Assembly (NCBI GenBank): GCA_020536535.1
Contig: JAHLWZ010000359.1
Location: 1-64,000, forward strand
Origin: Pelomyxa schiedti
Taxonomy: Eukaryota; Protista; Evosea
Reading direction: 5' to 3'
DNA length: 64,000 nt
In this document: positions 25,614 through 58,020 of the stretch, piece by piece
Layout of the letters: every line of letters begins with the position of its first letter
How positions within the stretch are numbered: position 1 is the stretch's first letter
Program-made: the position numbers and the translations under genes
Notes under the pieces: model-generated
The model's input: only the letters and a program-made list of their open reading frames with translations
Databases searched by the model: none
What the model was told of the DNA's origin: nothing

Positions 25614-25828
25614 GTGGGGCTGACCACACGAGGCGGCAGTGCAGTGCCTGGGCAATCAGGAGGGCACCCAACTTGGCGGCGAAGCAAGCCCCACCACCAA
25701 GCAGACACCCCCAGCAACCCCACAAAAAATAAGTTTAATATCGATGCTACCCAATGGGCAGCTTTCAGATATTAAGCTGAAAAGAACAGATACTACACTT
25801 GATCTTAGCCAAAAGGCCGAGAAGGTAT
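25614..25828 (-). ncRNA. U2: U2 spliceosomal snRNA (~215 nt)
   Basis: The - strand begins ATACCTTCTCGGCCTTTTGGCTAAGATCAAGTGTAGTATCTGTTCT (canonical U2 5' end with branch-site pairing GUAGUA). Stem IIa loop TAATATCTGA, Sm site ATTTTTTG, 3' stem-loops with an ACTGCAC loop. The 3' end is approximate. Confidence 0.97.
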
Positions 25829-51654: not shown

Positions 51655-52688
51655 ATGGCGGAATGGTTGTGGGTGCTGCAGGTTGTGAGTGGGTCGTACG
51701 TGGGCTTTTTCGGGCTGTATTTTGTGAGTTGGATAGTGGCGCCCAGGCTCATGAGGAGGCAGTACGAACGCGTCGAGGACGAAAAAAAGCAGGAGTGGCA
51801 CCAAAACTCTGTGTCATTTGTTCACTCCTTCCTGGTGACTCAGGTTTGGTTCCACAGGAATCCCGATACAATTGACAGAGAAGTGTAGGGATCGTTGCGT
51901 GGCGTGGTGTGGAGATTGATGCAGGTGGAAGTGTGGGATGCATCGCACCTGTCAACCGTTGTGGTGTGCGGCAGTAGTGAGGAGTACATTCACAATTATG
52001 CATTTTGTGTGTAGTTCCCTCCATGGCATTGGTTTGGTTCTAAGTGTCTTCCTTTTTTTTTTTTTTGTAAACAGGGCTGTTTGTGTCATGTGGATATTTT
52101 CTGTACGACATGACTCTATATCATGTATCCACCTGCTCTTACTGATTTGTTTTTTTTTAAAATCTAACATTATCACCAAGACATTTTCTAAAAACGGGAC
52201 CTTTTTCAAGCATTTGCACCACATAATTCCTTCGTTGGCCATATTTTGGTTCTACTATATGGATGTCAGTGTTCCGGTTGTTTCTGCATTCAACAGTAAT
52301 GAAGTACCTAGCCTATTGTGCTTGTTATTTTCTCTATCTCACAACTGGCCAGATAAGTACACCCTTCCTGGAACTGATGTGGTTTTTCCGGTATACCAAC
52401 CACAGCGCACTTGGAATGGCAGCCACAGTAATGTTTGTGCTCTCATTTGTAGTATCACGTGTTATTGGTGACACAATTCTGCTGTGCCTTACTCCCTGGG
52501 TTGTATGGGACACTGCAATATGCTCTACTGGTGATGACATACACCCACTACCACATAGAACTCATGTGATTGTCACTGTGCACGTACTGATGGTAGCCTA
52601 CTGCCTGCTTCAGTACGTTATGATGGGGCAGGTCACACTCTACATAATAAAGTTCTTCACCAAAAGAAAGGAAACCAAGGAAGCATAA
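51655..52688 (+). CDS. TLC-domain multi-pass membrane protein (TLCD/TMEM56-like)
   Basis: EWHQNSVSFVHS, HLHHI, E-ISTPFL, several hydrophobic segments. Confidence 0.8.
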
Positions 52689-52724
52689 ATACATAAAAAC
52701 CATTATTATCGTTTTTCATTCATT

Positions 52725-52876
52725 GGAGGGATGTCACCACCCCACACACAAAAATTGTTTCCAAGCAAAAGACGCGTGGTCATTTGCGGGAACAGGTAAG
52801 TAATTCGAAGAAGCGCCGCGACAAGATTGCCCCCGTGCTAGGCACGGGGGATCGCATCAGGCGCACTGAATTGATT
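52725..52876 (-). ncRNA. Candidate novel Sm-class snRNA (~150 nt) with internal 5'-splice-site-complementary ACUUACCUG
   Basis: Long 5' hairpin (52872-52802), ACUUACCUG (52801-52793), stem-loop (52792-52759), Sm site AAUUUUUG (52756-52749), 3' hairpin GGGGUG-GUGA-CAUCCC. CCCATAA element at the U2 spacing; lies between convergent genes. Confidence 0.7.
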
Positions 52877-52931
52877 TAGTTTCTCATATTCACACCGTTT
52901 CGTTTTTGTAGGGGGGGAGCTGCTCTGACAA

Positions 52932-52938
52932 TTATGGG
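52932..52938 (-). promoter_or_regulatory. DUSE-like element CCCATAA upstream of the candidate Sm RNA
   Basis: Same core as the U2 element; +62 nt falls on A52876, just before the 5' hairpin. Confidence 0.65.
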
Positions 52939-53029: not shown

Positions 53030-54220
53030 TTATTGTTTCTCAAAGGTGGGTGGTACTTTATTTTTGGCTTTTCCTCCACAAATTGCTGCTAGCAACAGTG
53101 ATTTTGATGCTTTTGGTGGTGAATCGAGGGTGTCAATGGTTTTCGTCTTAAGAGAGCCTGCAACCTTGGGATTTGTAAGTGTGAATCGAAGACAACAAGA
53201 ACAGTTACCTTCTTTGGTACTCGTAAGTTTTTCTGCATTTGTTGCCTCAAGCGCTTCATTTTTCTTTTGCAACTCGGCCTTAGTGGCTTGCAACTCCACG
53301 CAAGCTCTCTCAAGACGATTACGCAAGTCTAGAATTTCGTTCTGCAGTGCACTCTTTTCTTCATCTGTGCGAGCGATGAGAAAGGAGCAACCTTCTCTCC
53401 AACACTGAAATGAAAGGACGCACTTAATGCCCGTATAGCGTCCTTCTTGGCGTTCCATCTGGCCACTATGAAATCATATTGTGCATCAAGTTCTCTATCC
53501 AAATCAGAGGGATGTGGAGTTGCCATTTGAACAGAAGAAGCTGGAGCTGGAGCATAAGCCGGGACTGCACTTGCAGTTCCCATTCTGATCACCGGGGTAT
53601 ACTTGGAATTAATTCAGATAACCATCACAGAAAATGAAGAAAATGTGAGCAGAAACAAATACCTCGAAAGGGTTGTGAGTCTTCTTTGGAATCATCGTGA
53701 TAATTACACCGTCAGTCTTGCAAGCTTGCTCACGAACATATTTCTCCTGCTGGTCCACTTCTTGGTCCCAGTGAACTATAACTGATGCTCTGAATCCAGC
53801 ATTCACAAGGAAATCGATATTCCGGCCGCGTGTTGTGCAAACAACTGCTTTTCCATTGATAGTAGCTATGTGCTTAAGAAATTCACCCCTCTTGTGCAGA
53901 TGTAAATAGAAACCATCAGCCACACCGACCACTACACACCTTAACTGCCATTGGTACTAGTGTCACTTCAGCGATCCCGCGCCGTTTAAGTGCCCTCATC
54001 ACGTACTCACACTCTTCCCATTTTTTGCAGTACACTACCGTCAAACCACTCAACACCAAGGCTATATTTGTTGCCAACCTGGAAAATCGCAGGGACCAGT
54101 AAGTTCACACACGCAACATCGTTTCTTTACAGCAACAATCAAAGCGTAACAATCCCGCAGCACATACCGCGTAATCTTGTCATCATCGCTGGTGAACTCG
54201 TCCTGCACAATGTGCACCAT
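53030..54220 (-). CDS. Stand-alone degenerate SF2 helicase C-terminal (RecA2) domain + coiled coil
   Basis: Spliced DDKITRL...LTVVYCKKWEECEYVMRALKRRGI (motif IV-like), KAVVCTTRGRNID, VIVHWD, YVREQ, GVIITMIP; then heptads LQNEILDLRNRLERACVELQ. The 3' end is uncertain. Confidence 0.6.
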
Positions 54221-57561: not shown

Positions 57562-57626
57562 TTATGGGTCACCTCCCCCGATGTTCGCGTCCTGCGCGAG
57601 TGCGGCGGTATGCGAGCTTCCCATAA
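57562..57626. promoter_or_regulatory. Divergent pair of DUSE-like elements: ACCCATAA (-, 57569-57562) and TCCCATAA (+, 57619-57626)
   Basis: Two perfect WCCCAYAA matches back-to-back in one of the longest non-coding gaps of the window. Confidence 0.55.
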
Positions 57627-57680
57627 GAGAGAGTTCAAAGGACCACTTTCAATCGGAACACCAGTTTTCCCGGATCAGGT

Positions 57681-58020
57681 GGCAGTGTGCACAAGACCTT
57701 GCGGGGTTCATAGAAAAGGCTATTTGACACACCGACAAAATCTCATTGCAATAGCGACCAAAAACCTTTGTCACCACGTTCCAGTCTCTCTCATCTCTGG
57801 TTGGAGAGCACTTAATTACTCGTAGTGTCAGATAGCTGGCCGACGACTCTGATACATGGCCAGTATCGAGAGAGTGTACACTCAAGCACGGTGACATAGT
57901 TGAATGGCACCCTCAAGATGAGCTGTCCAAGCTAGGAAGTGAAAGAGCTAGAACGCCAGGGAGAAGCATTGAATCTGTTTCCTCTCAGGAGGTTCCTCCA
58001 AAGTGATTCACCACTGTTTT
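57681..58020 (+). ncRNA. Candidate ~340-nt structured ncRNA of unknown class
   Basis: Starts ~61-62 nt after TCCCATAA. The 5' and 3' ends pair (GGCAGUG/CACUGUU) and it ends in UUUU. Many nested helices; no convincing ORF. Confidence 0.6.

Follow-up and report, generated by a model that had tools for sequence, protein, structure and literature searches.

A candidate Sm-class small nuclear RNA gene of Pelomyxa schiedti with a U1-type donor-site sequence behind a 5' hairpin

In the genome of Pelomyxa schiedti, a gap of 340 nt separates two converging protein genes and raises the question of whether it holds a gene for a small nuclear RNA and, if it does, what an RNA that carries the donor-reading sequence of U1 internally might do. 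The window referred to below is the whole stretch of DNA that was analysed, 64,000 nt of contig JAHLWZ010000359.1. An initial annotation had proposed an unrecognised Sm-class snRNA at this place, and the elements that it named (a 5' hairpin, ACUUACCUG, a middle stem, an Sm site, a GUGA hairpin and, upstream, CCCATAAT) were all found again at the same positions. Genomic comparisons were made with the P. schiedti assembly of 52,367,397 bases in 5337 contigs, described as a genome of 52.4 Mb in 5337 scaffolds with 149,016 introns (PMC8887013). The features of the locus, in window coordinates, are as follows.

52263..52688, + strand: last coding stretch of a TLC-domain gene (PF03798, E 6.8e-7), stop at 52688, converging on the RNA gene
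52697..52724, - strand: A-rich 3' flank, A fraction 0.50 against a median of 0.52 behind other snRNA genes
52725..52877, - strand: predicted ~150-nt Sm-class snRNA, its start (52877 or 52876) placed by promoter spacing
52728..52743, - strand: 3' terminal hairpin with GUGA (GNRA) loop, -8.5 kcal/mol, z -3.5
52749..52758, - strand: 2-nt spacer AC and Sm site AAUUUUUG (Sm site 52756-52749), with the same 2-nt spacing in 20/20 U1 genes
52759..52792, - strand: equivalent of helix H (UUCC 52792-52789 with GGAA 52762-52759) and one 26-nt hairpin replacing SL1-SL3
52782-52771, - strand: degenerate U1-70K-like segment within the middle stem (52792-52759)
52793..52801, - strand: U1-type donor-site arm ACUUACCUG, internal, predicted unpaired (unpaired probability at least 0.9 over the first 8 nt)
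52802..52872, - strand: 71-nt 5' hairpin, irregular, its tip 9 bp and GC-rich; without a K-turn and unmatched in the rest of the genome
52901..52910, - strand: second promoter box, an A-rich run with CG at its end, at DUSE+36, score reached by 2.8% of random sites
52931..52938, - strand: CCCATAAT, a promoter element of DUSE type lying 62 nt upstream of 52876; its PWM score is 13.8, within the training range of 9.8-16.6
53030..53458, - strand: end of the upstream protein gene; its stop, with AATAAA, precedes the DUSE by 92 nt

The RNA polymerase II snRNA genes of this organism have a DUSE-type element (described in PMC7919456) about 60-64 nt before their start. Their own promoters (U1, U2, U4 and U5; 39 of them for the CG box) provided the reference set, and the CG of the second box lies at DUSE+34 to +40 in all but one of the 39, with a mode of +36. 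The locus carries both boxes, the DUSE at -62 and the CG at the modal +36, the second box scoring rather low within the training range. As had been annotated, CCCATAAT begins at 52938, 62 nt upstream of 52876, which equals the spacing in the U2 gene of the window. The spacings of both boxes predict a start at 52877-52876 and, therefore, the 5' hairpin would belong to the transcript, in agreement with the earlier proposal; of the start at 52875-52876 suggested there, position 52876 is kept but the best placement moves to 52877-52876. Forty-four sites with DUSE and box were found in the DNA examined, which is enriched for snRNA loci, and 37 of these are known snRNAs; among the remainder, only this locus has an Sm site at the expected distance. 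The Sm site AAUUUUUG is of the form PuAU4-6G and, by fold and sequence, single-stranded between hairpins, as in Sm-class Pol II snRNAs.

The fold of the locus is stable for its composition. The whole RNA has a folding z of -3.4 to -3.6 against shuffles, and only 5 of 852 windows of 150 nt (U2 being among the 5) fold better after GC correction, which places the locus in the top 1% of the window. The 5' hairpin alone gives -34.9 kcal/mol (z -5.07) on the - strand and -31.8 kcal/mol (z -3.70) on the + strand. For the whole region the two strands are nearly equal (+ -54.8, - -56.0), and this is one point in favour of supposing that there is no - strand RNA at all, the 9-mer being a + strand donor in the TLC 3' UTR, a chance assembly or part of a dead gene. 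The + strand does offer a perfect donor and a good acceptor-like run: an intron from a donor at 52796 to the acceptor-like TTTTTGTAG (52903-52911), ending at 52911, would be 116 nt long and filled with hairpins. However, what looks like an acceptor is the reverse of the conserved promoter box, the TLC stop is already 105 nt behind at the donor, the G-U pairs of the 5' hairpin favour the - strand, and five independent features (the DUSE and the CG box, the Sm site, the terminal hairpin and the A-rich flank), each at an snRNA spacing, read on the - strand. We regard such an origin as unlikely, and very probably the locus does hold a gene for an Sm-class snRNA, of whatever kind.

The arm is indeed the sequence with which U1 reads donors: ACUUAC(CUG) is present at 52801-52793 and predicted to be unpaired, and it pairs with CAGGUAAGUAA at -14.7 kcal/mol, compared with -14.0 for U1. 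The 9-mer by itself is unremarkable, with 291 copies in the genome against 298 for a control pattern. It is its setting that recalls U1. In all 20 U1 genes examined, helix H directly follows the arm and its 3' strand ends 2 nt before the Sm site, and helix H covaries completely across the U1 genes of this organism. At the locus, a 4-bp UUCC/GGAA helix adjoins the arm, and exactly 2 nt part its end from the Sm site; this spacer, AC, is that of the canonical-arm U1 class. TACCTG with an Sm site 26-56 nt further on occurs 31 times in the genome; inspected by eye, four Watson-Crick pairs in the register are present at this locus alone, two other matches reaching four with the help of G-U pairs. 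When the 121 nt preceding the Sm site were shuffled 2 million times, the exact arm came up in the exact helix-H register at a frequency of 7e-6, a figure for which a factor of ten or more should be allowed, the test having been chosen after the sequence was seen. With a covariance model made from the U1 genes of this organism, 52726-52803 comes out on top in the window at 17.1 bits (E about 0.002), ahead of a runner-up at 14.2, its alignment skipping the three-stem domain; a score of 17.1 bits is not significant genome-wide, and the RNA is absent from the genome-wide search with the genome-specific U1 model. Promoter, Sm site and helix-H register together thus support the proposal of a previously unrecognised gene for an Sm-class snRNA whose U1-type arm is internal.

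The sequence of helix H is unlike that of every U1 class, its pairing nonetheless being kept, and comparison with the organism's U1 genes shows no likeness to U1 beyond the arm and the Sm site. A helix that differs yet pairs, with no other likeness to U1, would fit an old, maintained gene better than a recent broken copy. The same lack of likeness can be read as favouring a genuine Sm-class RNA whose function is unrelated, its arm pairing with some specific non-coding RNA or its match to U1 being accidental, and other unclassified DUSE-driven RNAs do exist in this genome. An exact 9-mer in the exact helix-H register makes an accident improbable, and no partner stands out: a scan for complements among ten snRNAs gave a best p of 0.03 in ten tests, which is not significant after multiple testing, and the 340-nt RNA candidate at 57681-58020 has no clean site for the arm. 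An unrelated function is accordingly improbable, if marginally the least so of the alternatives considered here.

The genome has 27 full U1 genes with the genome-specific model (25 by Rfam), and the RNA is consequently not the working U1 of the organism; a rearranged or 5'-extended minimal U1 had been one option of the initial annotation. The differences are considerable. The arm lies at position 77 from the start predicted by the promoter, whereas that of U1 is at position 3; helix H encloses 26 nt compared with 93-101 in the organism's U1 genes; and the RNA lacks both an SL2 with open U1A loop and an SL3 in a four-way junction. The letters GAUCA and AG of the U1-70K loop do not vary among the 19 U1 genes aligned, whereas the RNA has GACCA and then CGCGUC. 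GACCACG, which had been likened to the U1-70K loop, is present as letters, but the fold closes GAC with GUC and leaves 5 nt in place of the 10-nt loop of U1. Similarly, CUAGCAC equals the U1A-loop variant of one U1 gene, but in the RNA it is buried in the 9-bp stem of the 5' hairpin; the open loop earlier drawn for CUAGCAC/GCCUAGCAC is disfavoured by the model, at -8.1 against -17.9 kcal/mol for the stem. Neither the U1-70K nor the U1A resemblance thus survives comparison with the invariant motifs of the organism's U1. Rfam RF00003 (U1) gave no match to the RNA at E up to 10. U1-70K is encoded by one gene in the genome and U1C is represented by one strong match, and no dedicated paralogue of either was found there for the RNA. 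Judged from its sequence, the RNA falls outside U1, yet it would keep the parts that pair with a donor and carry an Sm ring.

It has also to be considered whether the ~150-nt RNA is a precursor from which the 5' hairpin is cut, leaving an ~80-nt minimal U1 that begins near 52803 and serves only a subset of introns in splicing. U1 position 2 is exactly where the 5' hairpin stops, and the U1 model aligns end to end with the 78 nt that are left; trypanosome U1 offers a precedent for the size (PMC4041458). Such a form would, however, have no start of its own, as the interval 52-82 nt upstream of the arm contains no DUSE and hence nothing placed to start an RNA there; its cut end would be capless, and its U1-70K loop would still be wanting. 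We know of no U1 that is processed by removal of a 5' hairpin, and we consider this course quite unlikely.

Several features of the U1 genes themselves deserve mention. Many are in head-to-head pairs (C455:34088-34542, C448, C290, C966, C171, C716, C1082). There are three types of arm, ACUUAC, ACAUAC and ACGUAC, each with a distinct helix H sequence. Copies without SL3 or with an altered position 11 occur at C1151, C918 and C22:72485-72641, several at contig ends, and these are likely to be decayed copies.

Set against U1 as a family (RF00003 and the organism's 27 genes), the RNA shares the type of promoter, the arm ACUUACCUG, helix H, the 2-nt spacer, the Sm site and a terminal hairpin, but has an internal arm, an altered 70K loop, an extra 71-nt 5' hairpin and a single copy, and is without SL2 and SL3. 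A close parallel is the U1 of T. brucei, which is 75 nt long and functional without SL2; arm, one central hairpin and Sm site are common to both, but in the trypanosome RNA the arm is 5'-terminal and the AUCACGAA U1-70K site is retained, and the cell has no other U1 (PMC4041458). The Pelomyxa RNA differs from it in having an internal arm, a degenerate 70K site and full U1 genes alongside. The variant-arm U1 RNAs of Entamoeba, Mastigamoeba and Physarum are likewise instances of U1 diversification in amoebozoans, but in those the four-stem fold is kept and the letters of the arm are changed, the reverse of what is seen here (10.1101/2022.06.08.495308).

An alternative to be taken seriously, though the initial annotation had not considered it, comes from the inventory of minor spliceosomal RNAs. 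The other snRNA genes of the organism comprise 10 for U4, 18 for U5, about 20 for U6, one for U11, one for U12 plus a weaker match, and one for U6atac; no U4atac was found in the genome with Rfam and six patterns, one of these searches being too loose to be informative, and a candidate at C906 was dropped as it has no Sm site. The RNA might then be a highly divergent U4atac or a derivative of it, the 9-mer being a drifted strand of stem I and the likeness to U1 partly coincidence. U11, U12 and U6atac are present at one or two copies, the gene considered here is single-copy like those of the minor snRNAs, and it shares with U4 and U4atac (RF00015, RF00618) the overall topology of hairpin, single strand, hairpin and Sm site. 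In addition, its middle hairpin has by eye two short motifs, CCCGCA and CUUUUGCUU, in order before the Sm site, in common with the 3' stem-loop of human U4atac (10.1101/2021.08.01.454689), for which a rough estimate of chance is 1e-2 to 1e-3, and U6atac stem I is complementary to the arm and its surroundings at 8 of 10 bases.

Pairing of the RNA with U6atac is nevertheless at the level of shuffled sequences: stem II gives -7.6 kcal/mol (p 0.54) and stem I -4.1 (p 0.84), where the U4/U6 control gives -26.1 and -8.5 kcal/mol, with p < 0.002 for stem II. The major U4 outpairs the RNA on U6atac (-11.6, -9.2), and with U6, too, the RNA has no significant pairing. A K-turn is found in all U4 and U4atac (PMC2396436), but on inspection the 5' hairpin of the RNA has no tandem G-A pairs beside a 3-nt bulge and thus no K-turn. 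Rfam U4atac does not match the RNA, and U4atac commonly goes undetected outside opisthokonts (PMC11347168). Identity with U4atac is, on this sequence comparison, unlikely, at about the level of the ~80-nt minimal U1. U11 (RF00548) resembles the RNA in being single-copy and DUSE-driven and in having a helix that closes 2 nt before the Sm site; however, the true U11 gene is on contig C820, and the arm of the RNA would read donors of the major, not the minor, type.

Among the minor snRNAs, U6atac (C841:53279-53397, +) has GCCGA, the 'CC' variant that Acanthamoeba and Physarum are also known to carry (PMC2396436), and the organism's major U4 can pair with it moderately. The second U12-like match (C859:7899-8035, +) scores 41 bits, below the cut-off.

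It had further been suggested that the RNA is a chimera of U5 and U1. The GCCUAGCAC motif matches U5 loop 1 at 6 of 9 letters, and the RNA has a long irregular 5' stem. The motif is, however, paired in the 9-bp stem, the invariant U run is absent, and nothing corresponds to the open loop 1 GCCUUUUAC; alignment to the organism's U5 gives p 0.80 against shuffles, Rfam U5 does not match, and 18 true U5 genes exist. A chimera is thus the least credible of the alternatives and very improbable. A spliced-leader RNA would have a leader followed by its own donor and be multicopy, whereas here the gene is single-copy and contains the complement of the consensus donor but not the donor itself; the comparison with Rfam SL1 gave 11.8 bits against a cut-off of 75 (E 8.1). 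By inspection there is no CCCUAA-type template as in telomerase RNA, and identity as a repeat element was rejected.

Searches for relatives covered this genome and metagenome contigs. Rfam scans at three sizes returned only chance matches for the RNA; BLAST, a covariance model of the RNA and four patterns found no paralogue in the genome; and a pattern scan of metagenome contigs gave 8 matches, all without fold or promoter context. The TLC piece, used as a single open frame like the other protein queries, found no homologue that would point to a syntenic locus, which says nothing of longer kin. As no homologue came to light in these searches, the RNA itself offers no covariation. A single other site whose promoter is plausibly of snRNA type, C762:36857-37054 (+), fits a DUSE, an internal ACNTACCT and a U-run at similar spacing; it may be chance, does not fit the U4atac pattern and is unmatched by the covariance model of the RNA.

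Other small RNAs were noted in passing. An unclassified family of ~120 nt with DUSE and CG box lies head-to-head with U4 genes (L022:1772, +; L023:1773, +; L026:1368, -; L027:417, -); its members begin with an A-rich segment and have a GGGUG/CCCC hairpin, a stretch rich in U and a 3' hairpin that is conserved and includes CUCAU(U/A)GCAG. A U6-like variant (33.6 bits) with a DUSE in front of it lies at C386:144461-144569 (-); it reads ACAUGAGA where ACAGAGA would be expected, is extended at its 5' end by a segment that folds back onto the region for pairing with U4, and does not end in poly-U. Within the window are the U2 snRNA (25614-25828, -; 139.8 bits), which has a lengthened stem III and a promoter with DUSE but no CG box; a DUSE followed by a structured stretch of ~340 nt with a U run at its end (57620-58020, +); and a tRNA-Ala(TGC) (223-295, -).

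The reading that we prefer, with a probability of roughly 0.5, is that the locus encodes a U1-derived accessory Sm snRNP that binds strong donor sites and is more likely to mask or regulate them than to take part in routine splicing. Of the three options in the initial annotation, that of a regulatory snRNP is the one retained. Promoter, fold, accessibility of the arm, register and loss of the U1-70K and U1A sites are seen in the sequence; transcription, capping, Sm loading and descent from U1 we infer from it. The single-copy RNA polymerase II gene would give a capped RNA of ~150 nt, which would be loaded with an Sm ring. Its 3' half would retain the geometry of the U1 core, with SL1-SL3 exchanged for one short hairpin, and the 71-nt hairpin would precede the arm and might be the docking site for a dedicated protein of the particle's own. 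The particle would pair with strong donor-like sites of the type CAG|GUAAGU(AA), in competition with true U1, and, being without the normal contacts to U1-70K, U1A and SL3, would more likely mask or regulate a small set of such sites than assemble spliceosomes routinely. This reading is put forward because the 27 full U1 genes of three arm types cover routine splicing and because the particle is single-copy and without normal U1-70K and U1A contacts; that it masks rather than activates is purely conjectural. A small set of sites would be in keeping with the finding that perfect consensus donors are not enriched in the genome.

No RNA with an arm behind a hairpin was found described in the literature, which does not prove that none has been, nor did we find there a U1 that reads donors other than by its capped 5' end. 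More tentatively, and at somewhat less than even odds, the RNA may be the core of a functional tenth spliceosomal-type Sm snRNP, derived from U1, with its arm internal behind a 5' hairpin and without U1-70K and U1A sites. It would be a dedicated regulator or an alternative factor for donor recognition, possibly archamoebae-wide and missed by screens with covariance models. If this is true, a U1 core placed behind a large hairpin would mean that the donor arm can work internally, and cells would be able to build a second donor-binding particle for control and not for routine splicing. Inventories of snRNA based on Rfam would then miss real amoebozoan particles, which would bear on the lineages reported to be without U1 or U4atac.
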